Assembly: GCA_002269645.1 (NCBI GenBank)
Contig: NIVC01002379.1
Span: 1-64,000 of the forward strand
Length of the DNA stretch: 64,000 nucleotides
Direction of reading: 5' to 3'
Source: Macrostomum lignano
Taxonomy: Eukaryota
Below, piece after piece: positions 3,302-59,687 of this stretch. Position numbers and translations under genes: made by a program. Positions within the stretch are counted from its first letter, which is position 1. The number at the start of each line of letters is the position of its first letter. The notes under the pieces are model-generated. The model was given only the letters and a program-made list of their open reading frames with translations, searched no databases and was not told the origin of the DNA.

Positions 3302-6300
3302 GACTCTTGGCTTGTTTTTTGATATGTTGCTGCTGAAATATGATTTTTTAGTACATTTTGAGGGCTTGAGTCAGTGGAGACGCATCTTTATCTATGTAAT
3401 TTAACGTACGTATACTTACATGCCTAAAAGTCGGTTTCCTGGGAAATCGAATGTGTTTTCGTGTCCTTTTGACTTCCTGTGTTAGAATCTGTCCGGCGAA
3501 TGTCGAGTTGAAATGCCAGAAATTTTTCTATCAAGCCTAACAAAGCATTAGGCAAGAGAAGAGAGTTTCTGTTTTTTTAGAGACGCGTAAGAAGAGAGAG
3601 AGCTAGGAGGGGCAAAATCTCCCGATCGATATAGCCGTTACCTGGGAAACTCGTCCTTCGCCCATCGTTTAGAAAGCGGCAATGCTCCCTAGGCGTACAG
3701 CCGGGTGCAGAGGGACAGTGATGGAGAGCGATCCTGTGAGTGAGAGAAAAAGGGAATGGAGAGTTTCGTCTTCCCCTTTGAGGAGAGAAACGGCAGAAGA
3801 GTACACATAGTGGAGAGAGGATTTTCTGATGAGCACTAATTATCTCGTCCCTTTATCTATCTCTAATCCAACGACCTCCACGACCCGCGATCCTGCTCGC
3901 CCCTAGTGGTACTGCAAAGGGACAGAGAGACGAGCTGGCTCGTGCATCGGTTTTTTGTTTTTTGCAACCTGCAAGCCGCCGCTTCCCTTGCCATCCCATT
4001 CTTTCTGTTAACTCAATAGCGCATGGCAAGCAATGATCCCTTCTTCTCTCAGCGGCCGCAAAGCCATGTCCCTGTCGCTGCCTCCGCCTGGCTAATTTTA
4101 GAAACAACCAAGCAGCCACTCCTCGGGCGCATTACCTTACTTGACCCATATGCTAATCCGCCAATCCCATCTCTTTCCAGCCTTCCCCAGGCTTTTCATT
4201 CGACTTAGAATCCGTTGACATTTCGAGTCTTTCAGAAAAGCACTACAGAAAATTTTGCGTTAGAGATGGCTGATTTCTCACATGTTTTACTTGGATTGCA
4301 TGTCATGTTCTGCTGATAGCTTAGAGCTGTCTTGGTTACCTATTAGCTCCATTGTTAAGATTAAATTGTTTTATAAAATATGAAAAATCTAATGCTCAGT
4401 TGTTAAAACTGGTGTGGTTCGTTTAGTTTCAATGAATTACATTAATTAGTGCAATGCGTTTTTGCCCACTCCGGCAGCAACTGCTCACAGCGTAGCTGCA
4501 CTCAACCCTGATAATGACAAATTTAATGAGTGCTTAAGTGCCTCTAAAAATTAGTAGAGTTAATTAGTTAACGATTCATTTCCCAGTAGCAGCTCTGCTG
4601 CCGCAAGATCACGAAGAGTTTGCTTTAGCACACTAGAGAGAGGGAAAAAGAAGAGAGAGAGAATTAAGTCCAGTGTCTAAACACACGAACTCCCACTTCC
4701 AGACCTCAAGCCTGGGAACAAAATTCAGTGATCACCTACTGGTGCGGGCTCCTCTTCTTTGTCGTGCAGGTCTGTAGAACTCGTAGTCTTCTTGCGGAGT
4801 TGTCTTCTTGAATTCAGAAAATAGTAACAATTTAATCCATCGACGTGGAAGTATTCCTCGAGTGCAAAAATGAGAAATGCGCCCTAATAACAAAATCAAC
4901 TCTATAACAATGACGAGGTCCTCCATAAAGGGCGTCTTCTTCTATAGAAATAACGGAATCGGAGTCGTGTGCTCCTAACGGTTACTCTAGGGTACCAAAA
5001 TCAATCAAATCGATAATCCTCTAAGAGTATCGGAATCGGTCCGCAGATCCTATCCTATCCCTTAAGAAAAGGGAGGCCTCAAATTCAATGAACTCAGTAA
5101 AATCAACTGATCAGTAACAGCCGGCAAAAAAATCACTCTCAATAATAAAATAACAAAGACTCGAACAAAGGCTTACCAATCGGTATTTGTTTCCCACAGA
5201 GATATAGCCTCGCTCCGCTGCTCTGGCAAAGCTCAAGATCTTGTGAGGCTGCTCCGATTCTGGGATTTCAGCTCGGATTTTTCGCTTGTATTTATACACA
5301 ATTTGAGTCGATCTTGAGCTCAAACTGGTTTTTTTATGAGTTCACGAAAGGAATTTTTATTATTTGACAGGTGGGGTTTTTTAATAGAAACAGTGAAACT
5401 TAGGTAAATTTCAGGTTAAAGTTTGCTGTATTTCGGAGTTCTAAAATTAAATCTTGTTAACCGGTTTTTCGCACAATGAAATTGTCATTTGCTGTTTTCG
5501 TGATACTACTAAGAATAGGTTATGATCGCGGGACATAATTTTGTTTTTTTCGCATTTTATCTCACTACTTCTAGTAGTCTGTTTGTACTGTATTTTGGAG
5601 ATTTCTACACTCACCCCGACTCCCTCCCATTCAGAGTTTCTGCGTCTATGGCAGACAGACTTCCTACCCCAGCACCCCTTTTATCTCCAGCAGTCGGCAG
5701 TAGAGCTTCCGCAAAAATTGTTCAGCTGGAAATTAAACTTGGATAAAAAACGTATGGAATTGAACTACGATTTGATTTTAGAATTACACGACTTTTATTT
5801 GATGTAACAATCTTAGATGCAGCAAGACGAGTAGTATACTATTAGAACGCCAGCACAGAAAACAACAACATAGCAAGATAGAAAGCAGCATAGTTACAAA
5901 GTAGAGAGAAAATAACTGTTGTTGTCTCTTTTTTATTGGGTCGTTTATTTACCCGGCCAAATAAAAGAAACGGACGTTAGCATAGACTTATTTAGATCGA
6001 GTGTGCAAGTGGAGAATAAATAGCAGACTATATACATACAGCTATACATCAATACAAATATAAATTGCCGTTTAAAAATAAAACTATTATGAAGCAGGGA
6101 CTTCTTGAGCACTCTGCAGGACTGGAAACTCACAATCACGCATGGTAAAGGGTTAATTGTTAAGGTGGATTAGAGGCGATTCCTAAGGTGAATTTGGGGT
6201 ACTTGGGATGAAGCTTTTTCACCATGATTTGCGAGTTTCCCGTCCTGGGTGATTAAGACACTCAGGCTGATTAAGAAGGCCTTGTTATAAAGCTGAAACT

Positions 6301-8298: not shown

Positions 8299-8677
8299 CA
8301 GGGGCATCGCCATGGATTTTATGATGGGGGGACAAAGCCATGCAAGAATTCAACATGTACATATACATGACTAAATTTTGGCACTCATTTTAGCGCCGCA
8401 GGCACTCATTTTGGCGCCGCAGGCATTCCTTTTAGCGCCGCAGGCACTCATTTTAGCGCCGCAGGCACTCATTTTAGATTAGCGCCGCAGGCACTCATTT
8501 TGGCGCAGAAGGCGCTATATTTTGTCGCCCTGAAGAAAAATTATTGATTACCACATTAATTCACAACGACTCACAAAGGTGTGGGGGTGGGGGGACAAAG
8601 CATTGGCATGTCCCCCCAAAGCTTTTACTGGGGGACGGGGGACATGTCCCCCTGTTCCCCCGGTGGCGACGCGCCTG
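8299..8677. mobile_element. hAT-type MITE, family A copy 1, with internal ~22-bp minisatellite
   Basis: Imperfect TIRs CAGGGGCATCGCCA / revcomp CAGGCGCGTCGCCA. Exact 8-bp TSD GGTACAAG at 8291-8298 and 8678-8685. Homologous to 50390-50857. Confidence 0.9.
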
Positions 8678-9270
8678 GGTACAAGTATACATGCATGTTA
8701 CATGTATACATGTAGACCTACATGTACATGTACAGGTATAGCTAACGCGTGTAAACGTAAGAAAATAAAGCGACACCTTTCTTTTGAACGTATGCATGTG
8801 TTTTGTCATGAAATGTTTTTAATGGCCTCTCGAAATCGATGTATTGTAATGTTTTCCACCTTGACACCCGATATTTAGTGGGGCTTATGGCGTGTAACAT
8901 AAAACAGGATTTATCATTCGTTCTCGATTTTTATATTTCTGCAGTTAAAGTCAAAAGTCTTACAGATGGACAACAGACACGCAGATCTTGAACATTTAGT
9001 ATCGGGTAAATAACAAATAGTCCAAAAAATTGGTTTATTGGACACCACACAATTGCGGGCTAAAACCATGAGTTTTAGTCCGGAAAATGATATTTTAAAG
9101 AATAAATTTAGTTCTTCTGTTATGTAGCCTTGTACAAAACTGCCACTAAATTTTATTATTAATTGATTTGTGTCATTTTCTGACAATGTTTGGACAATTT
9201 TTTTGTTTTAATCTGTATTCAAAAGAAACCATATTTTTAAAAGATTTTTAAAACCACGCTTTTGCCCCCG

Positions 9271-9286
9271 GATTGGTCCTGATTGG
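9271..9286 (+). promoter_or_regulatory. Paired inverted CCAAT boxes, possible promoter of the zinc-finger gene
   Basis: GATTGG at 9271 and 9281 (10-bp spacing) in a small GC-rich patch, followed by ~1 kb of AT-rich intron-like DNA before the ATG at 10328. Confidence 0.35.
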
Positions 9287-10327
9287 CCCCGCTCAGGCGC
9301 TCACTACCACTCGCAAGTTATAAGTATATCCTTTAACAGTCAAAAGTTACGAAGCTACATACATTGGCAGCAAAAACCATTTATCTGTAGTGAAACTCGA
9401 AGTTTCTACAATATATTTTTATTCTCTCAGTTTTGATTTGCTGCTGCTTTCATTTCATAGGGCCTAGTATTATTATTATTAAGCCATGTATTATTTAAGA
9501 AATTAACGCATTGCCATTAAGATGGATTATCAGACTTGTAGTTCCATATCTAGAATATTAATAGCATTGCTACTAGAATTAAAAGATGTCAGTAGAAGGC
9601 TATAAGCTATTTAGTAAAGGGACTAGGTGTAGGCTAGAGGACCTATGGCTAAAGATAAATTTAAATTTGGCCTATTTATTGATTTATTTTTTTATTTGAA
9701 TTTTTTAGGCCTTTAATAAAACTATTAATTACATTTTGCAAATTAAAAAGCAACTTTAAAATACTGTATAATCAACTGAATAAGTAAGCAGTAAGCTTAT
9801 AACCCAAAATCAAATTTAGCAGTAATTTATAACAACAAACTCAATAATTAATTATAGTTTGGTAGTTATTACCTTAAAAATTAGTTAAAATTGTCTACTA
9901 AAAAGCATTGTTTTATTATGCTCATATTATTGTGTAATTTAAAAAATAATCATAACTCATACTTTTTCTTGAGACCCAGCCTATGGGCTATGGTTTACAT
10001 TATTTTTTCTTTATAATAATAAGTTTTGATTTTTATAGGCCTATGTAGAGATTAATATACTTGAAATTCCATTTATAAATTTTCTTTATAAAATTTATTG
10101 CAATTTTGTTAATATTTGGTTCAATTGGTTGTATAAATATTCTACAATTATACCTGTTTTTGTTATTTATTTTGTTATTATATATGAATAAATATGAATA
10201 AACAGGCATTGTATTATAATAATTTTTTAAACTTAAACATATTTCTAATATTTAGATAACTAGTTTTGACTATAATAATAATCTGAATGCAACATATTTT
10301 TATCAAATATGACATCCCAATTGCCGC

Positions 10328-33585: not shown

Positions 33586-34082
33586 GATCCGCGCAATAGC
33601 TGCGGCTGTGCTATCAGTTGCACATCTGGCCATTAGGGCAGGTGTAATCAAATTGCTATTACACTCGTATTATTGTGCACTAAAAACTTATTAATTTTCG
33701 AAATGAAGCATAATCCTTTCATTTTTATGGAAACTGCAGAAACACGGCAGTCAGACCGCATTATGTCGTGAGAATGAATCGTGAATCCAGACTTCTGGTT
33801 CTGGGTCGCCTTGGCTGAACCCGTGAGTACGGCATGCGTTTGGTGCCTGGCAATGTCTCAATGGCAGCATCATGGCTGGCGTGTTTGCCGAATCTATTCA
33901 TAGTGTATGTATGGGGCGGGACGCCTTGGCAAACACGAACTCTGCAAAGCAGGAGGAGCGCGGCATAAGTGGATGAAATGCCTGCTCAGTTGTTGAACCG
34001 CCTTCTTCCCTTGCTGTTCGTCCTTGTAATCGAACCCAGTGGTTACAAACAAATGCGTCTACATGTCTACATGTAACCCAGT

Positions 34083-36645
34083 GGGTCATTGAGACATTGG
34101 GTCACTGATCATGAGACACTGGGTCATTGAGACAGTGGGTCATTAACACATTGGGTCACTGATCATGAGACACTGGGTCATTGAGACAGTGGGTCATTAA
34201 CACATTGGGTCACTGATCATGAGACACTGGGTCATTGAGACAGTGGGTCATTAACACATTGGGTCACTGATCATGAGACACTGGGTCATTGAGACAGTGG
34301 GTCATTAACACATTGGGTCACTGATCATGAGACACTGGGTCATTAAGACAGTGGGTCATTAACACATTGGGTCACTGATCATGAGACACTGGGTCATTGA
34401 GACAGTGGGTCATTGAGACATTGGGTCACTGATCATGAGACACTGGGTCATTGAGACATTGGGTCACTGATCATGAGACACTGGGTCATTGAGACAGTGG
34501 GTCATTAACACATTGGGTCACTGATCATGAGACACTGGGTCATTGAGACAGTGGGTCATTAACACATTGGGTCACTGATCATGAGACACTGGGTCATTGA
34601 GACAGTGGGTCATTAACACATTGGGTCACTGATCATGAGACACTGGGTCATTAAGACAGTGGGTCATTAACACATTGGGTCACTGATCATGAGACACTGG
34701 GTCATTAAGACAGTGGGTCATTAACACATTGGGTCACTGATCATGAGACACTGGGTCATTGAGACAGTGGGTCATTAACACATTGGGTCACTGATCATGA
34801 GACACTGGGTCATTGAGACAGTGGGTCATTAACACATTGGGTCACTGATCATGAGACACTGGGTCATTGAGACAGTGGGTCATTAACACATTGGGTCACT
34901 GATCATGAGACACTGGGTCATTGAGACAGTGGGTCATTAACACATTGGGTCACTGATCATGAGACACTGGGTCATTGAGACAGTGGGTCATTGAGACATT
35001 GGGTCACTGATCATGAGACACTGGGTCATTGAGACAGTGGGTCATTAACACATTGGGTCACTGATCATGAGACACTGGGTCATTGAGACAGTGGGTCATT
35101 AACACATTGGGTCACTGATCATGAGACACTGGGTCATTGAGACAGTGGGTCATTAACACATTGGGTCACTGATCATGAGACACTGGGTCATTGAGACAGT
35201 GGGTCATTAACACATTGGGTCACTGATCATGAGACACTGGGTCATTGAGACAGTGGGTCATTAACACATTGGGTCACTGATCATGAGACACTGGGTCATT
35301 GAGACAGTGGGTCATTAACACATTGGGTCACTGATCATGAGACACTGGGTCATTGAGACAGTGGGTCATTAAGACATTGGGTCACTGATCATGAGACACT
35401 GGGTCATTGAGACAGTGGGTCATTAACACATTGGGTCACTGATCATGAGACACTGGGTCATTGAGACAGTGGGTCATTAACACATTGGGTCACTGATCAT
35501 GAGACACTGGGTCATTGAGACAGTGGGTCATTAACACATTGGGTCACTGATCATGAGACACTGGGTCATTGAGACAGTGGGTCATTAACACATTGGGTCA
35601 CTGATCATGAGACACTGGGTCATTGAGACAGTGGGTCATTAACACATTGGGTCACTGATCATGAGACACTGGGTCATTGAGACATTGGGTCATTAACACA
35701 TTGGGTCACTGATCATGAGACACTGGGTCATTGAGACAGTGGGTCATTAACACATTGGGTCACTGATCATGAGACACTGGGTCATTGAGACAGTGGGTCA
35801 TTAACACATTGGGTCACTGATCATGAGACACTGGGTCATTGAGACAGTGGGTCATTAACACATTGGGTCACTGATCATGAGACACTGGGTCATTGAGACA
35901 GTGGGTCATTGAGACATTGGGTCACTGATCATGAGACACTGGGTCATTGAGACAGTGGGTCATTAACACATTGGGTCACTGATCATGAGACACTGGGTCA
36001 TTGAGACAGTGGGTCATTAACACATTGGGTCACTGATCATGAGACACTGGGTCATTGAGACAGTGGGTCATTAACACATTGGGTCACTGATCATGAGACA
36101 CTGGGTCATTGAGACAGTGGGTCATTAACACATTGGGTCACTGATCATGAGACACTGGGTCATTGAGACAGTGGGTCATTAACACATTGGGTCACTGATC
36201 ATGAGACACTGGGTCATTGAGACAGTGGGTCATTAACACATTGGGTCACTGATCATGAGACACTGGGTCATTGAGACAGTGGGTCATTGAGACATTGGGT
36301 CACTGATCATGAGACACTGGGTCATTGAGACAGTGGGTCATTAACACATTGGGTCACTGATCATGAGACACTGGGTCATTGAGACAGTGGGTCATTAACA
36401 CATTGGGTCACTGATCATGAGACACTGGGTCATTGAGACAGTGGGTCATTAACACATTGGGTCACTGATCATGAGACACTGGGTCATTGAGACAGTGGGT
36501 CATTAACACATTGGGTCACTGATCATGAGACACTGGGTCATTGAGACAGTGGGTCATTAACACATTGGGTCACTGATCATGAGACACTGGGTCATTGAGA
36601 CATTGGGTCACTGATCATGAGACACTGGGTCATTGAGACATTTTG
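34083..36645. repeat. 54-bp higher-order satellite (three 16-bp subunits plus GATCAT), ~2.55 kb
   Basis: Unit GAGACACTGGGTCATT-GAGACAGTGGGTCATT-AACACATTGGGTCACT-GATCAT, ~47 copies, very homogeneous. Confidence 0.97.
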
Positions 36646-39421: not shown

Positions 39422-41290
39422 AGAGAGTAGATTCCAGAAAGTAGACTCAGGTGAGCAGATCCTGCAGAGTAGATTCCAGAGAGTAGACTCAGGTGAGCAG
39501 ATCCTGCAGAGTAGATTCCAGAAAGTAGACTCAGGTGAGCAGATCCTGCAGAGTAGATTCCAGAGAGTAGACTCAGGTGAGCAGATCACGCAGAGTAGAT
39601 TCCAGAGAGTAGACTCAGGTGAGCAGATCCTGCAGAGTAGATTCCAGAGAGTAGACTCAAGGTGAGCAGATCACGCAGAGTAGATTCCAGAGAGTAGACT
39701 CAGGTGAGCAGATCCTGCAGAGTAGATTCCAGAGAGTAGACTACGGTGAGCAGATCCTGCAGAGTAGATTCCAGAGAGTAGACTCAAGGTGAGCAGATCA
39801 CGCAGAGTAGATTCCAGAGAGTAGACTCAGGTGAGCAGATCCTGCAGAGTAGATTCCAGAGAGTAGACTACGGTGAGCAGATCCTGCAGAGTAGATTCCA
39901 GAGAGTAGACTACGGTGAGCAGATCCTGCAGAGTAGATTCCAGAGAGTAGACTCAAGGTGAGCAGATCCTGCAGAGTAGATTCCAGAGAGTAGACTCAAG
40001 GTGAGCAGATCACGCAGAGTAGATTCCAGAGAGTAGACTACGGTGAGCAGATCCTGCAGAGTAGATTCCAGAGAGTAGACTACGGTGAGCAGATCCTGCA
40101 GAGTAGATTCCAGAGAGTAGACTACGGTGAGCAGATCCTGCAGAGTAGATTCCAGAGAGTAGACTCAAGGTGAGCAGATCACGCAGAGTAGATTCCAGAG
40201 AGTAGACTCAAGGTGAGCAGATCACGCAGAGTAGATTCCAGAGAGTAGACTACGGTGAGCAGATCCTGCAGAGTAGATTCCAGAGAGTAGACTCAAGGTG
40301 AGCAGATCACGCAGAGTAGATTCCAGAGAGTAGACTCAGGTGAGCAGATCCTGCAGAGTAGATTCCAGAGAGTAGACTACGGTGAGCAGATCCTGCAGAG
40401 TAGATTCCAGAGAGTAGACTCAAGGTGAGCAGATCACGCAGAGTAGATTCCAGAGAGTAGACTCAGGTGAGCAGATCCTGCAGAGTAGATTCCAGAGAGT
40501 AGACTACGGTGAGCAGATCCTGCAGAGTAGATTCCAGAGAGTAGACTCAAAGTGAGCAGATCACGCAGAGTAGATTCCAGAGAGCAGACTCAGGTGAGCA
40601 GATCCTGCAGAGTAGATTCCAGAGAGTAGACTACGGTGAGCAGATCCTGCAGAGTAGATTCCAGAGAGTAGACTACGGTGAGCAGATCCTGCAGAGTAGA
40701 TTCCAGAGAGTAGACTACGGTGAGCAGATCCTGCAGAGTAGATTCCAGAGAGTAGACTCAAGGTGAGCAGATCACGCAGAGTAGATTCCAGAGAGTAGAC
40801 TACGGTGAGCAGATCCTGCAGAGTAGATTCCAGAGAGTAGACTACGGTGAGCAGATCCTGCAGAGTAGATTCCAGAGAGTAGACTCAAGGTGAGCAGATC
40901 CTGCAGAGTAGATTCCAGAGAGTAGACTCAAGGTGAGCAGATCACGCAGAGTAGATTCCAGAGAGTAGACTCAGGTGAGCAGATCCTGCAGAGTAGATTC
41001 CAGAGAGTAGACTCAAGGTGAGCAGATCACGCAGAGTAGATTCCAGAGAGTAGACTCAGGTGAGCAGATCCTGCAGAGTAGATTCCAGAGAGTAGACTCA
41101 GGTGAGCAGATCCTGCAGAGTAGATTCCAGAGAGTAGACTCAAGGTGAGCAGATCCTGCAGAGTAGACTCAGGTGAGCAGATCCCGCAGAGTAGATTCCA
41201 GAGAGTAGACTCAAGGTGAGCAAATCACGCAGAGTAGACTCAGGTGAGCAGATCCCGCAGAGTAGATTCCAGAGAGTAGACTCAGGAGAG
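39422..41290. repeat. 42/43-bp satellite GAGTAGACTCAGGTGAGCAGATCCTGCAGAGTAGATTCCAGA, ~1.9 kb
   Basis: Visible period, ~44 copies in a few interleaved variants (CTCAGG, CTCAAGG, CTACGG; CCTG, CACG). Confidence 0.97.
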
Positions 41291-41859
41291 CAGATTCAGT
41301 AGATTAGATTGTTGTCGAGCAGAATGCGATGAAAGTAGTTGTAAAAGAAGGTCAGACAATAATTATTCGATGGCCAAAACACTCATCTGATTTAAACAAT
41401 CTTCAAAAGCAGTTGCCGTATCAAAGGGAACTGACACTGAGTGATCGTGTCTGTTGGGCTCGGGGCTAATCCGGCCAGGTGATTATAGAGACCATTAAAG
41501 ACTCGTGTTTAACCCTCAGATAGTCAAAGCTCTGTTAATTTCATGAAAACAACGCCCCCAGATTGAAAGGAGGCTTCAGGGCCCGCTAATTGTTTTAGCA
41601 CCTTCGGGAGAGCTTTGATTATGCTGAAAGCAGCAGCAATCTGCTTTCTGTCCGGAATTCATTGCCGTGTCTCTCGCGCTCCGCTTCTGTTCTGCATAAG
41701 CCGCCTCGCACTTGCTCCGTGAGTCCTCACTGATCCGCTCTTGCTTACGGACTCTCATCTCTTTCATCCTGATCCCCTCAACTCTGACCCCATAACCTCG
41801 CTCTACTTTACACAAATATTCTCTGTGTAGCTCTACTTTGATCAAATCTCAATACCCAA

Positions 41860-47635: not shown

Positions 47636-48667
47636 TCACAGTGCTCCCCCCGAGTCGTTTTTGCTTCCACTAGCCCCGCTTCCATCTCCGTCACCGCCTC
47701 CGCCGCCCAGCGACACTCTCGATGGAACCCTAGACGGCATGCTCGCGTTGAGCATAGCGACGAACTCGGCATAGTCGATGCAACCGTCGCCGTTGATGTC
47801 GACCTCTCGGAGCATTTCTTCCACCTCAGCGTCCTCGTACTCGTGGCCGAGGCCGTCTAGTACGGCCTTCAGCTCCGGTGCTGATATATAACCGTTGCGG
47901 TCCTTGTCAAACACGTGGAACGCAGCCAGCAGTTCGTCCTCTGAGTCGTCGGCGTGCGTCTGATCCACCTGGTGCTGCTTTTTGCCGGCGCGCTTCCTCG
48001 GGTCGGACTTCATCAGCTGGATGAACTCCTCGAACTCGATAGTCCCGTTGCCGTCCTTGTCAATGCGACGGAGCATATCCTATTGAGTTGTGTGGAATTT
48101 GGATCTACATATGATTGGAGACTGACTTCGATACGACTGCAGTTTTCTACCAGTGGTTCTATTCCAAATAATTCAATCACGGACTACATACCTACGAGTA
48201 TCGTTTCTTAAGTAGTATCCTTAAAAGCGAATTCTTTTACCTTTAATTGCTCAGTGCTTGGCGATCGACCAATGCATCGGAGAACTGTTCCCAGCTCCTC
48301 AGTAGTGATGCAGCCGTCTCCTAGGTAAATTATGGATTAATGGCTTGTTGACACATTTAATAGCCTCTAATTTCTTCTGATTAAGAGTAGCGAAGTCATT
48401 ACCAACCAATTACATTTCTTATCAACTTTTAATTGAGCTGAATTCTTTTGAGCCGATGATCACAAGGTTTGGGATTCGATGCGCTTTTCAGTAAAGAAAA
48501 TTGATTTCTCAAATCGAGGTCAAGCTTCATCAAGAGATCTTCTCACCGTCTTTATCGAACAGTTGGAAAGTTTCCTGAAAAATCTGCAGCTCAGAGGCGG
48601 TCACCATCAGACTGTCGTCTGACTCGTCCTTCGCTGATGACGAGGCCTGTTCATCCGAGGACATCAT
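47636..48667 (-). CDS. Calmodulin-like protein, 4 EF-hands, 3 coding exons, ~214 aa
   Basis: Exons 48667-48547, 48320-48241 and 48079-47636 (GT-AG, phases 1 and 0). Loops DKDGDGCITTEE, DKDGNGTIEFEE, DKDRNGYISAPE and DINGDGCIDYAE. An acceptor at ~48685 indicates an upstream exon or trans-splice site, so the start could lie further 5'. Confidence 0.9.
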
Positions 48668-50389: not shown

Positions 50390-50857
50390 CAGGGGCGCCG
50401 CCATGGATTTTATGTTGGGGGGACAAAGCCAAGAATTCAGCATGTACATGTACATGACTAAATTCCATCATTTTGAGAATTGTGTTGTCAGCCCTCATTT
50501 TGGCACCGCAGGTACTCATTTTAGCGCCACAGGCACTCATTTTGGCGCCGCAGGCATTTATATGGTGCCGCCCGCAGGCATTACTTTTGGCGCCGCAGGC
50601 ATTAATTTTGGCGCCGCAGGCACTCATTTTAGCGCCGCAGGCATTCTTTTTGGCGCCGCAGGTACTCATTTTGGCGCCGCAGGCACTCATTATAGCGCCC
50701 TAGGCGCTATACATGTATTTGGGTGGCCCTGAGGAGAAATTATTGATTACCACCAACCATGGTCACAAGGTAGGGTGAGGGGGACAAAGCATTGGCATGT
50801 CCCCCCATAGCTTTTACTGGGTGGGACATGTCCCCCCCCCCGGTGGCGACGCGCCTG
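50390..50857. mobile_element. hAT-type MITE, family A copy 2
   Basis: Same ends as 8299-8677. Exact 8-bp TSD TATCTAAG at 50382-50389 and 50858-50865. Longer internal CACTCATTTTGGCGCCGCAGG array. Confidence 0.9.
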
Positions 50858-51071
50858 TATCTAAGAAATAATACCAAATTGTAATGAGATGAATCACTTA
50901 CTTACAGCACTTACTTTTCTGTGAGTTGATCAAAGACCTTATAAATCATATGACTACTCAAGGCATGCACACAAAGCTATTTAATTCATCCTTAGTCGTT
51001 TAATTACCTTAAGATTTTAATTACTCTGCGTGTTTTTATTCATTTAAATTCTGTTGCAATTTATCGTTCTT

Positions 51072-52359
51072 GTTGTTGTTAAACGGGGGTGGGAAGCTGG
51101 GCTACCCGCGGATCAGCCCTGGGTGGGCTCTGCCGCTGAGGGGCACTGCCAGGGGCCAAGGCATTAACTGTCCAGGGCCCGAGATACCCCATGGAATGCA
51201 TTGGGATTGGACCCGGCTCAAAGCGCGGGTGGGCGAGTTGACCCAAACCTACGGTACAAGACACCGCCAACCCAAACAGTGGAATCAGGGACGGTGCTAG
51301 GACCGAGTCCACCCAGGCCACCCCCCAGCTAGCGAGTCCTCGGGAGTGCGCAGAAAAATTGGAAAGCGAAATGCTTGAAATATTACTGAAAAAAGCGGTC
51401 CGAGTGAGGAGTTACTCCTAAACCTACGGAAATGGCTTAAACTATTGGAGCGAGTCTGGGCAGCTAATTACCAAGAGCGATCCTACTACAGGGTCTTGGC
51501 CCCCTGAAGGTCTCGAGCCTCAAGGCTTTTCACTACCCAGCTCTATTTTGGAGTGAGTCTGGAAGGCTTGTATCCGAGGGGGAGACTCTAGGCGGACAGG
51601 ATACACCTCTATTGCTACCAACCCAAGGGCATCGCCTATCCAGCTCATTATTGGGGGCCAGGCCAAGGGGTCGGGAGAAGAGGCACCCAGGGCAAGAGGA
51701 CTCCGGACTCAGCCGGTTGTCCCCGGTTCGGGACGAACATCCTTCCCAGGACACCAATCCACTGTCAGGATGAGAGCCAGAGACACGCAAGCAGGGACCT
51801 TCAGCAGGAGCCAGGAGATGGACCCGAGGACAGGGCAAGATGGACCGGGCAAGGGCAGAGCTCATAACTCCAAAGATTGGATGGCTACTAATGGCCGGGT
51901 AAAAACAGATAAAAGCAAGGGATAAAACCGCGCTGGGATGCCAGCCCAGAAAAAAAGAATGGCAGTGGGGAGGAGCACCATAGCCCTAAAGCAGGCAGCT
52001 TGCCGACCTGCAGCCCGGGTGCTCAGCCTCAGGGCTGGCATGCTACTGGGTCTACCGTACACCTTTGTGAATTGGTCATTTTCTTTCCTGCAGGGCGGGT
52101 ACGACCGGGGGGCTCAGTCCCGTCCTAGCCACACTGCAGTCCAGAGAACCAACTCACTCCGGGCACCACCCCCCTAAACCAAGGCCGAGGGCCGAAATTC
52201 TATAGATAAGAAAAAGAATAGGGTTTAGTATTTGTAATGGGCACAGCCCCTCCGGGGCGGACCCTTAGAAATTGGCATAGCCAATCGGATTGCGCACAAC
52301 CCTTAGACAAGCTGCCAGAGAGGCAACCAGGGTAAAAACAGTCAGAGACCGTCTTTACG
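51072..52359 (-). mobile_element. Non-autonomous retroposed element with a spliced-leader-like 5' head, (AAC)n tail and 12-bp TSD
   Basis: TSD TTTATCGTTCTT at 51060-51071 and 52360-52371. Minus strand starts CGTAAAGACGGTCTCTGACTG and ends ..CCCCCGTTT(AAC)3. GC-rich interior in AT-rich surroundings; no recognisable protein. Confidence 0.8.
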
Positions 52360-53176
52360 TTTATCGTTCTTACGGGTTTAAAAATACAGAAAGTAAAACA
52401 AATATACGCTACGCTATCTTTTTACACATAGGAGTTAAAAGCTAGTATTCAGTTTTAATATGGTTATAAAGAAAACAAATATTAATTGTACTTCATAAAA
52501 GGTGATTTATAGGTAAAATTAATTATAAACTTCGACTGCCTCGTCGTCCGGCCTCTTCATAATCCTCCTTTACTATATTTAGAAGCAGCCCCAATGAAGC
52601 ATTGTAAAAGTAATTACTCGAGTCCCCTGCTTTCCAGTTATTTGGATATTGGTTTCCAATGCTTCCAGTTACCGTTTTAACTATTAGCAGAACTAACTAG
52701 GCCTACTAACTAAATAGGCCTAAACTAAATTAAATAACTAGGCCTAGCCTAGTAGTGCCTAGTGGGCCTAGGTAGTAGCCTAGTAGGGTGGTAGGCCTAC
52801 GGATAGCCAATAAGAATCTAGAATAGACTCGGCTGGGTTTAAACCTAGACCTAACCTAAACTAGGCTATCCACTTAATTAATTTATCCTTATCTACTCTT
52901 CTGTTTGTGCCTAGGTAGTAGCATTTTTACACATCATCCATAGTGTTTTAATTGTAAATTAGATAGAGTTTGTTTTCTAATATTTTCATAGCCTAATGAA
53001 GTTCTTATATAGGCATGGCGGCCATGTCTATAAGTATGGAGCTTATAGGCATGGCGGCTGTGTCTATAATATTTGAGCTTAGGCCTATACTTTATAATTA
53101 TAGGCATGGCTATAATTATCAATATAAAATGTGTATTCTGTAGGGCCTTCTCATAAGCAAATGGTGGCTTAGTAGA

Positions 53177-53359
53177 CAGTGGTGCAACCAGGGAGGGGGG
53201 GTAGTCCTGCCCCCTTAGGTGGAGACCCAAAAAAATCAAAGGGGGGACCAAGCAAATTTTTGCTAAAAACAGAGTCATCCCTCTGCCAGTCTGCCTCCCC
53301 CTCCTGGGACTTTACCCTTGAGAATCCACCCCCTCAAAAAATTTCTGGTTGCACTACTG
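53177..53359. mobile_element. hAT-type MITE, family B (183 bp)
   Basis: 15-bp TIR CAGTGGTGCAACCAG / CAGTAGTGCAACCAG. 8-bp TSD TTAGTAGA / TTAGTGGA (7/8 match). Confidence 0.82.
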
Positions 53360-54970
53360 TTAGTGGATATGTCAACTGCCTTGTGATTACATACTTAATA
53401 ATAAGTAATAAACTAAAGTCTTACAAAAAAGCTACAATATTTCACAATTGTTTATTTAGGTTTAAATAATCCATAAGTACCAAGCTAAAAAAAGTATAAA
53501 AACTAACTAGTAGTCAGCTAAGGATATAAGCAAGTATAGCTTAGTCTGAAATATAATAATATTAGCATTTATTATTTATTATGCCATTTTATTGGCTTTG
53601 AAGTTTTACATTAGGACATTCAAATAGATATCTGACAATAAAGCCAGGCAAGCAAGTTACTGTAAGGTCAGAAAAGCAGTTGATATGCAATAGATTCTTC
53701 TGGTATAAAAAATTGGCAATCTCTCATTGCATGTCATATATGTAAGAAAGCTTGTTCCCATAGCTTTGCTATTAGACTTTGCAATTATATAGTATGGTCT
53801 CTATATTCCATATTTATCTTTTGTCATTGGAGACTAGATCTGGTAATGATTGAGGCTGCTAAAGAAGATAGAGTTGACAATTTTCTATAGACTTTGTTTA
53901 TAGGCATAGGGCCTATTGATAAATCAGAGAAAGGCTTTAGTAGGCCTAAGCTAGGAAATAAGATACATAGTTTGTATAAGTATAAGTCATCTTGTTGGTA
54001 TTAATGGTCTACTTATAGAAGAGCAAAGTAGTCTTATTTGATGGCTTTTTTCTTCTTAATAAGAGGCAGTAAAACATAGGTTGATGGTTGATGATTATTT
54101 TTCTAGTGGCAATGCACTCAAGTGTCAAAGTGCTCAACAAAAATACTTTTTTGCCAATCAGCTTTTAGGGCCTAATGCCTAAGATCTACTTTTCTTTTTT
54201 AGTAGGTTGAGTTGCAGTAGTTAAGATTAGATAGGTGGTATAATCAGGGAAAATTATAAATAAAAGGCATAATAAATAGGGTAAGGTGGCAACATGCATG
54301 AGTAGGGCTAGGAATAGAACCTGTCGAAAAGCCAAAATTGAGTTTGAGATTAGGCACCTTATGGCATCAATCTTATAGAATTAGATATCATAGTATAAAA
54401 TAAAATAATAACTTGAATTCAGCATTTGATAGTAAAAGGTCAATTTTTTCTTATCTTATCTCTTATATATATTGATAATTTTAAATTTCATTCATCTTTT
54501 CTAATTGCTAATAGAACAAGTTAACAAAAGTAGAACAAAATATCAATGAGCAACAACTTGTCAAGCTAATATTAGAAATAATTGGGCAAAGAAATTTAAA
54601 TAGTTGAAAGATAGTTGACCAATGCCAGAGAGGCTATATTTTCAAAAATAGACCTCTTCATTTGCCATGCACAGAAAAAAACCTAAATTATTGATTTTGC
54701 AAACCATGTGCAAAAATGTTTAAAATACACACAATATACAAAAAATATAAAATGGCCCAATTTGGAGCCACTAGACTCAAAAAATACATAGAGGAGATAG
54801 GAAATAGGAATTATTATTTTCAGTTTATATGAATAAATCTGACATCTAGATCTATGCCAATAAGTATCTTGCCTTTTCAATTTTCATATAGCAATTAAAC
54901 AATATAGACCTTAATTTTTTGTTAGAGCATGTCATTCATGTTGCATTAACTTTAATTTTGTTATACTGAA

Positions 54971-55541: not shown

Positions 55542-59687
<4,146 letters not shown>

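Follow-up and report, generated by a model that had tools for sequence, protein, structure and literature searches.

Chimeric retrocopies that join a small nuclear RNA (snRNA) to a long interspersed nuclear element (LINE) were reportedly described by Buzdin in 2002 and 2003, and arise when the reverse transcriptase (RT) switches templates. In these chimeras (U6/L1 and, above all, the U5 and U3 counterparts; Doucet 2015; PMC4476161), one pair of target-site duplications (TSDs) surrounds all of the joined sequence. On the 5' side stands a sense-oriented small nuclear RNA with its own 5' end complete and, in the U5 and U3 cases, its 3' side cut, U6 being captured whole; the 3' part ends in a LINE-type tail. 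The U5 and U3 segments of L1 chimeras are 5'-complete and 3'-truncated since the switch lands internally, and the stringent LINE clades also form chimeras, snRNA pseudogenes of L2 and RTE being found only in this form (PMC4476161). Here we describe a 1288-bp insert in the flatworm Macrostomum lignano which has a similar anatomy, and which opens with a fragment of the spliced-leader (SL) RNA. It lies in a window of 64 kb, NIVC01002379.1:1-64000, of the Mlig_3_7 assembly (GCA_002269645.1, DV1 line). The insert differs from the snRNA/LINE chimeras in its acceptor, which would be SL RNA, in the length copied (16-21 nt, compared to 36-98 nt for the U5 pieces; PMC4476161), in its 3' part, a non-coding RNA with an (AAC)n tail and no recognisable LINE, and in its junction, which forms a 12-bp hairpin. 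Most economically, it would belong to the known class of small-RNA/LINE template-switch chimeras, with SL RNA as the partner. Among small nuclear RNAs, SL RNA is an abundant one and belongs to the Sm class, and we know of no report of it as a partner in such chimeras. By analogy, and given the Sm-like site in the two macrostomid SL RNA genes described below, it would be of the same general kind as the snRNAs found joined to L1.

Other described elements resemble the insert in part. The crocodilian SINEU elements, with U1 or U2 heads (Kojima 2015; PMC4494074), also carry a piece of a small nuclear RNA made by RNA polymerase II (Pol II) at the 5' end of a non-autonomous retroposon, and there too internal oligo-T runs rule out RNA polymerase III (Pol III) while the source of transcription is unclear. 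However, SINEU elements are multi-copy, shorter than 500 bp and contain recognisable snRNA segments (PMC4494074), whereas a single copy of 1288 bp with a 16-21-nt fragment is present here; SL RNA homology of substantial length was not found in the head, identity being confined to nt 1-21. In the non-LTR (lacking long terminal repeats) retrotransposons of SL exons (SLACS, CZAR and CRE of trypanosomatids, and NeSL-1 of nematodes; PMC4640811) a retroelement is likewise joined to the 5' part of an SL, and co-transcription from the SL RNA gene would yield an SL(1-n)-element RNA. Unlike these elements, which encode an RT and an endonuclease and reside inside SL genes (PMC4640811), the insert is non-coding, intergenic and placed at a weakly SL-like site, and it may be an internally deleted derivative of an SL-exon-specific non-LTR retrotransposon. 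SVA and Sadhu-type retroposons (PMC4494074) are similar in being ~1-2 kb long, non-coding, mobilised in trans by LINEs, and neither LINE nor short interspersed nuclear element (SINE), but the tail here is not poly(A) and a single copy is known.

Target-primed retroposition into one of two locus copies

The exact 12-mer TTTATCGTTCTT occurs twice in the window, at 51060-51071 and 52360-52371, and the pair encloses 1288 bp with a GC content of 56%, compared to 35-45% GC in the adjoining 1-kb bins. The sense strand of the insert is the minus strand (52359..51072). Read in this orientation, the 5' copy of the repeat, AAGAACGATAAA (52371..52360), is followed immediately by the start of the insert, CGTAAAGACGGTCTCTGACTG, at 52359, and the insert closes with ...CCCCGTTTAACAACAAC at 51072, so that the complete order is AAGAACGATAAA, CGTAAAGACGGTCTCTGACTGTTTTTACCC ... 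CCCCGTTTAACAACAAC (52359..51072) and again AAGAACGATAAA (51071..51060). The 3' tail, (AAC)3 (51072..51080, minus strand), abuts the 3' copy of the repeat (51060..51071, minus strand), which starts with AAGAAC. The two copies are still 12/12 identical.

A second copy of this locus is present on contig NIVC01001210.1. The two sequences align collinearly across ~19 kb, with identities of 92-98%. The alignment of the contig to the window reaches 52360 and restarts at 51071, and the two aligned blocks overlap by exactly 12 bp. Base by base, the contig reads ...ACCCGT AAGAACGATAAA TTGC..., with a single 12-mer (5709-5720) and no insert. The 12-mer is therefore a true TSD, and the insert entered one of two diverged copies of the locus. 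The Mlig_3_7 assembly holds large duplicated blocks, and the DV1 line has extra copies of the large chromosome (PMC5730564). The insert arose after the two locus copies diverged, or in one lineage only. An earlier, sequence-only reading of this stretch had described an exact 12-bp repeat around a 1288-bp GC-rich insert that starts at the first base after the repeat and ends in (AAC)3 on the minus strand, and these coordinates and the composition proved exact. The empty site that it proposed to look for is present, base-precise, in the duplicated locus, and its attribution of the TSD and simple-repeat tail to target-primed reverse transcription is borne out by that site.

The 12-bp target was duplicated by LINE-type target-primed retroposition into one of the two locus copies. 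When the nicked bottom strand, ...CGTTCTT-3', is compared to the complement of the (AAC)n tail, 5/6 positions agree, so that the strand could anneal to the tail, as expected for target-primed reverse transcription. Such a match would be typical of LINEs that are selective for their own 3' end, here one with a microsatellite tail. We consider it extremely improbable that such an event has been mimicked by a repeat arisen by chance, by faulty assembly or by loss of sequence from the other locus. Both loci do come from one redundant, PacBio-based assembly (PMC5730564), but the empty site is base-precise with its single 12-mer, the ends of the insert are the SL 5' end and a microsatellite tail, and an SL match as good as the one described below is expected by chance at ~2e-6. 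The event is a real, cleanly bounded and well-dated retroposition that carries a genuine fragment of the SL RNA 5' end.

The body of the insert (51081..52338, minus strand; element nt 22-1279) is GC-rich and has no long open reading frame (ORF), and nothing in it points to a coding function or to a known RNA. Its longest ORF starting with ATG is 110 aa, and a 784-aa concatenate of the major stop-to-stop translations of the insert had no homologue in a collection of 5.8 billion proteins. No Pfam domain was detected in the insert, which encodes neither reverse transcriptase nor endonuclease and contains no RT remnant; nor did it contain a match to Rfam at E<=1, a tRNA-like part, an AATAAA signal or poly(A). 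The sense strand has eight runs of T>=4, and the first of these, T5 at nt 22-26, comes straight after the head. Folding gave a structure z-score of -1.8 for nt 29-150 and ~0 past nt 150, so that a structured RNA body was ruled out and the terminal hairpin alone stands out. An internal duplication seeded by CTGTTTTTACCC scored no better than shuffled sequences and was rejected.

No second copy of the insert was found within the 64-kb window or the duplicated locus, and strings from the junction, body and tail had no match in viral contigs. A cap-snatched viral mRNA as the source of the leader was dropped from consideration, there being no ORF, no homologue and a tail of LINE type. The protein search was uninformative on further copies, as the two M. 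lignano proteins checked (P0001 and P0192) were each recorded once, from the NCBI assembly contig only. When a Tc1/mariner transposase of the duplicated locus was used as a multi-copy bait, matches were obtained only on metagenome and Logan contigs of <=1.5 kb. Published repeat tables for M. lignano assign 1.66% of the assembly to LINEs and 0.39% to SINEs, as bulk percentages without family descriptions.

The spliced-leader head and its junction

The start of the insert matches nt 2-22 of the SL at 20/21 positions. This is the only such match in the window, and the chance expectation across all positions is ~2e-6. The 44-nt M. lignano SL consensus was published by Grudniewska et al. (2016; PMC5173321), and later papers on M. 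lignano reduced the SL to a 35-nt core starting from CGGTCTC (PMC8629364). Under the 35-nt definition just 13 nt of the head would be SL, and the 9-nt prefix therefore needed checking. The prefix, CGTAAAGA, was also recovered by independent assembly of the SLs of M. cliftonense, which reads GCCGTAAAGACGG..., and of M. hystrix, which reads CGTAAAGACGG... (PMC10468722, Table S3). An exact-pattern scan of public contigs with the 5' half of the SL yielded two macrostomid SL RNA genes, on the contigs that we call L003 and L005, besides three bacterial 19-mers that match by chance. The two SL RNA genes each have the prefix directly joined to the core, reading TTTG CCGTAAAGACGGTCTCTTACTGCGAAGACTCAATTTATTGCATG and then GTAAGACACC..., and the exon is followed by a hairpin, the Sm-like site AUUUUUAG and a terminal hairpin. 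The prefix is thus a genomic part of the SL.

The head is in sense orientation and corresponds to the extreme 5' end of the SL RNA. The first base of the insert is the first base of the M. hystrix SL, and lies 1-2 nt inside the SLs of M. lignano and M. cliftonense and of the genomic SL RNA genes. Conservation between L003 and L005 starts ~6 nt upstream of CCGT, which places the true 5' end of the SL near (G)CCGTAAAG.

L003 is the JGI metagenome contig Ga0302322_100095745, with the SL RNA gene at 616-725 and an exon identical to the M. lignano SL; a eukaryotic-looking ORF of 382 aa lies beside the gene, at 1774-2922. L005 is JAGQZA010000190.1, a contig in a metagenome-assembled genome labelled 'Flavobacteriaceae bacterium', with features at 1121-1283 and 1590-1699. 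It carries a eukaryotic U1 snRNA gene (151.7 bits) ~300 bp upstream of the Macrostomum-type SL RNA gene, and is therefore flatworm DNA mis-binned into a bacterial genome. The SL RNAs of L003 and L005 differ only in hairpin loops and stem ends, which supports a three-hairpin structure.

We then asked how much of the SL is present. The 16 nt CGTAAAGACGGTCTCT (52344..52359, minus strand) equal SL nt 2-17 at 16/16 positions and form the unambiguous head. They are followed at the junction (52339..52343, minus strand) by G, in place of T18 of the SL, and by ACTG, which equals SL nt 19-22; the sole mismatch of the 21-nt match thus falls at the border between the 16/16 part and ACTG. The ACTG could be SL-derived, donor-derived, or microhomology shared by both. 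The 3' half of the SL does not occur anywhere in the window, and the head has no splice donor and no ATG from the SL, so that the insert contains no more than a 5' fragment. From nt 22 onwards the insert is no more similar to the real SL RNA genes than expected by chance (P = 0.63-0.97 compared to shuffles), and a covariance model built from the two genes, L003 and L005, failed to match the head even with filters off and a threshold of E <= 10. The pairwise tests and the covariance model ruled out a diverged whole SL RNA as the head, and the SL-derived part of the insert is 16-21 nt only. The SL given in the sequence-only reading is letter-for-letter the published consensus, and its account of a 20/21 match from the second SL base, confined to the 5' half of the SL and lacking the ATG, agrees with what we found.

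The first 28 nt of the insert (52332..52359, minus strand) fold into a hairpin of 12 bp, GUAAAGACGGUC and GACUGUUUUUAC around a UCU loop, with 10 Watson-Crick and 2 G-U pairs. Its minimum free energy is -12.4 kcal/mol (z = -4.87), and none of 200 shuffled sequences folded as well. In the same register all 12 positions pair in the insert, compared to 6/12 in the canonical SL. The chance of the 7 non-SL nucleotides completing the stem is ~7e-4, an estimate that is post hoc, but low.

Possible origins of the insert

We lean, with no more than middling confidence, towards an RT template-switch chimera in which a fragment of SL RNA was added to a non-coding donor RNA. This is favoured because the head is a 5'-only SL fragment, a mismatched G and four shared nucleotides lie at the junction, and the tail shares microhomology with the target. 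The donor would have been a non-coding RNA of ~1.27 kb, not transcribed by Pol III and ending in (AAC)n, with a probably capped 5' end. With its tail paired to the nicked target, ...GTTCTT-3', it would have been copied as far as its 5' end by a LINE RT of the 'stringent' type. Reverse transcriptases add a base opposite an RNA cap, and the additional G at the junction might have been such a base. The RT would then have switched templates to SL RNA, or to a trans-spliced mRNA at its SL end, landing internally at about nt 17-22; the donor cDNA, ending in ...CAGT and a further C added opposite the cap, would have base-paired with ACUG of the SL (nt 19-22) and been extended over nt 17 to 2. Entry would have been helped by the 4-nt ACTG microhomology and, possibly, by pairing of the first 12 nt of the donor with SL nt 3-14, which may have brought the acceptor RNA to the enzyme. 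Having run to the SL 5' end and halted 1-2 nt short of it, the RT would have left the product TSD - SL(2-17) - G - ACTG - body - (AAC)3 - TSD, and the SL fragment would be a by-product of reverse transcription with no function. Of the origins offered in the sequence-only reading, template switching as in U6/L1 fits the anatomy better than a SINE, with the qualification that U5 and U3 are closer precedents than U6. Its label of 'SINE-like' fits poorly with a 1288-bp insert that has no Rfam-like head, eight T>=4 runs and 16-21 nt of SL only.

Several points weigh against a template switch of this kind. The 12-bp hairpin with its G-U pairs (~7e-4) is not predicted by a plain switch, and calls either for donor-SL pairing, which is an extra assumption, or for selection at the RNA level; a G-U-containing hairpin looks like the latter, and selection would favour a heritable head. 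An element that targets SL genes would account more readily for the likeness between the target and the SL 5' end. The event is assumed to be a one-off from a single examined copy, and nothing in the 84 kb of M. lignano sequence compared, from an assembly of 764 Mb, shares the body or the tail, and no partner LINE was found.

An alternative that we regard as possible, if doubtful, is that the SL head is heritable. The insert would then be one member of a non-autonomous, Pol II-type retroposon family, and every RNA of that family would start with SL nt 1-17/22. Either a master copy would sit inside an SL RNA gene and be transcribed from its promoter at SL +1, or the SL piece would have been added once by template switching and then propagated, as in the U1/U2 heads of SINEU. 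The present copy would be an off-target or an ordinary dispersed insertion, and the 5' hairpin a selected feature of the RNA. The former would have parallels in SLACS, CZAR, CRE and NeSL, which are co-transcribed with their SL-exon target, and in R2, which is co-transcribed with 28S rRNA. In Ascaris, Hannon et al. (1990) reportedly found that the SL sequence itself acts as a promoter element within the SL RNA gene, and a retroposon might for that reason be expected to retain the SL. The hairpin speaks for a heritable head in that it joins the SL fragment to the next 12 nt and includes G-U pairs, which are tolerated in RNA but not in DNA pairing. The pre-insertion target CCGTAAGAACGAT (51060-51071 and 52372-52377) matches SL nt 1-13 at 10/13 positions and places the insertion point at SL nt 16/17, in register with an SL-derived part that ends at nt 17; this resemblance is weak, with p = 0.003 in a post hoc register and p = 0.09, which is not significant, when unconstrained. 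SL exons are the targets of LINEs of the NeSL clade, and in the R5/LIN branch of this clade, which is found in flatworms, target specificities have diversified (PMC4640811), while SINEU shows that snRNA pieces can be added recurrently at the 5' end of elements whose oligo-T runs exclude Pol III (PMC4494074). On the other hand, a single copy was found in the window and the duplicated locus, it does not lie in an SL gene, and it encodes no reverse transcriptase or endonuclease of its own. Published SL-based searches of the genome report no such family (PMC8629364), though they required a 100% match to the 35-nt core and would therefore have missed an overlap of 13 nt. Tentatively, then, Macrostomum might harbour a retroposon family that starts with the first ~17 SL nt locked in a 5' hairpin, an SL-RNA counterpart of SINEU. 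With similar reserve, such a family could have spread from a master copy in an SL gene, by way of an SL-gene-targeting flatworm LINE lineage for which the site described here was an SL-like pseudo-target, or through SL RNA having been captured repeatedly.

As the sequence-only reading had concluded, the insert is not an ordinary retrocopy of a trans-spliced mRNA, since the 3' half of the SL, poly(A) and coding sequence are all missing. It is improbable, in our view, that such a retrocopy later lost SL nt 23-44, and perhaps more, by internal deletion, or that the parent RNA arose by an aberrant splice from within the SL exon or from an SL variant gene with a short exon. The parent would need a first exon starting TTTTTACCC or ACTGTTTTTACCC after an AG acceptor, or an SL variant with a donor after nt 22. 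The SL has no GT at its 22/23 boundary that could serve as a donor, the insert has no poly(A), AATAAA or ORF, and the 12/12 intact TSDs argue for a young insert in which a precise deletion is unlikely to have had time to occur. In the relict SLs of dinoflagellates it is the 3' part of the SL that is retained, and not the 5' part. SL-bearing templates would be abundant, with up to ~30% of M. lignano genes reported to be trans-spliced (PMC8629364), and the relict SLs of dinoflagellate retrogenes (Slamovits & Keeling 2008; PMC5585692) are a further case of genomic SL sequence obtained through reverse transcription. Those retrogenes, however, are copies of mature trans-spliced mRNAs and have whole or 5'-trimmed SLs beside coding sequence, unlike the 5' half found here in non-coding sequence with no poly(A). 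A classical SINE, that is, a short Pol III-transcribed element with the SL-derived head as its internal promoter, is hardly credible. The layout of head, body and tail, the TSD and the simple-repeat tail are those of a SINE, but the insert is 1288 bp long, compared to about 80-600 bp, has no similarity to tRNA, 7SL or 5S, and contains internal Pol III terminators, namely, on the sense strand, the T5 run just after the head and a further seven runs of T>=4. We exclude a SINE because the insert is so long, has a head that is not of Pol III type and contains these terminators. SL RNA is a Pol II transcript in the animals studied.

Surroundings of the insert and significance

The target is intergenic, between an Arf/Ras-like GTPase gene and an EF-hand gene, and the insert overlaps no annotated gene. 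The EF-hand gene lies ~2.4 kb downstream of the insert in the same orientation. Its ORF (47636-48076, minus strand), ~3 kb from the insert, is 99% identical to BOX15_Mlig001604g1 of scaffold NIVC01001210.1, and a second member of the same protein cluster, BOX15_Mlig007932g2, is located within the window (GCA_002269645.1, NIVC01002379.1).

The two copies of the locus differ elsewhere as well. An intact Tc1/mariner element with terminal inverted repeats (CACTCAGCAACATTTAAAACGC...) and a transposase ORF of 345 aa is present at 8575-9886 of NIVC01001210.1 and absent from the window at 48189/48191, and is a second presence/absence difference between the duplicated loci. Sequences 99% identical to this transposase occur on short contigs of several unrelated ENA metagenome assemblies and Logan runs. 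At 3441-4689 the same contig has ~1.25 kb of extra AT-rich sequence (29% GC) with repeated ATGGC[TC]ACCATGT-type motifs, compared to 53281-53430 of the window. These two differences of ~1.3 kb were ruled out as related inserts, one being unrelated AT-rich sequence and the other Tc1/mariner. The window is unusually rich in minisatellites, with 85 rows in the output of TRF, units of 14-162 bp and arrays of up to 2.5 kb (for example, 34079-36610, 39424-41310 and 55964-56976). A 21-bp unit, CTCATTTTGGCGCCGCAGGCA, is repeated near the insert at 50494-50699, and again at 8380-8513. Minisatellite copy number differs between the duplicated loci.

On the minor disagreement among published SL definitions, the insert provides independent genomic evidence that the M. 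lignano SL RNA starts (G)CCGTAAAGA, 9 nt upstream of the 35-nt 'SL' of recent annotation studies. If the event was a one-off, SL RNA would join the short list of small nuclear RNAs onto which LINE RTs jump, and a flatworm LINE with a microsatellite-type tail would be seen to switch templates at the template end, a step from which new SINEs are believed to arise. In view of the hairpin and of the SL-like target, a heritable SL head, the more novel alternative, is still to be reckoned with. If the head is heritable, it would be the first SL-derived head of a retroposon and a hint of SL-gene-associated retroelements in free-living flatworms, with consequences for the calling of trans-spliced genes from SL-containing reads.

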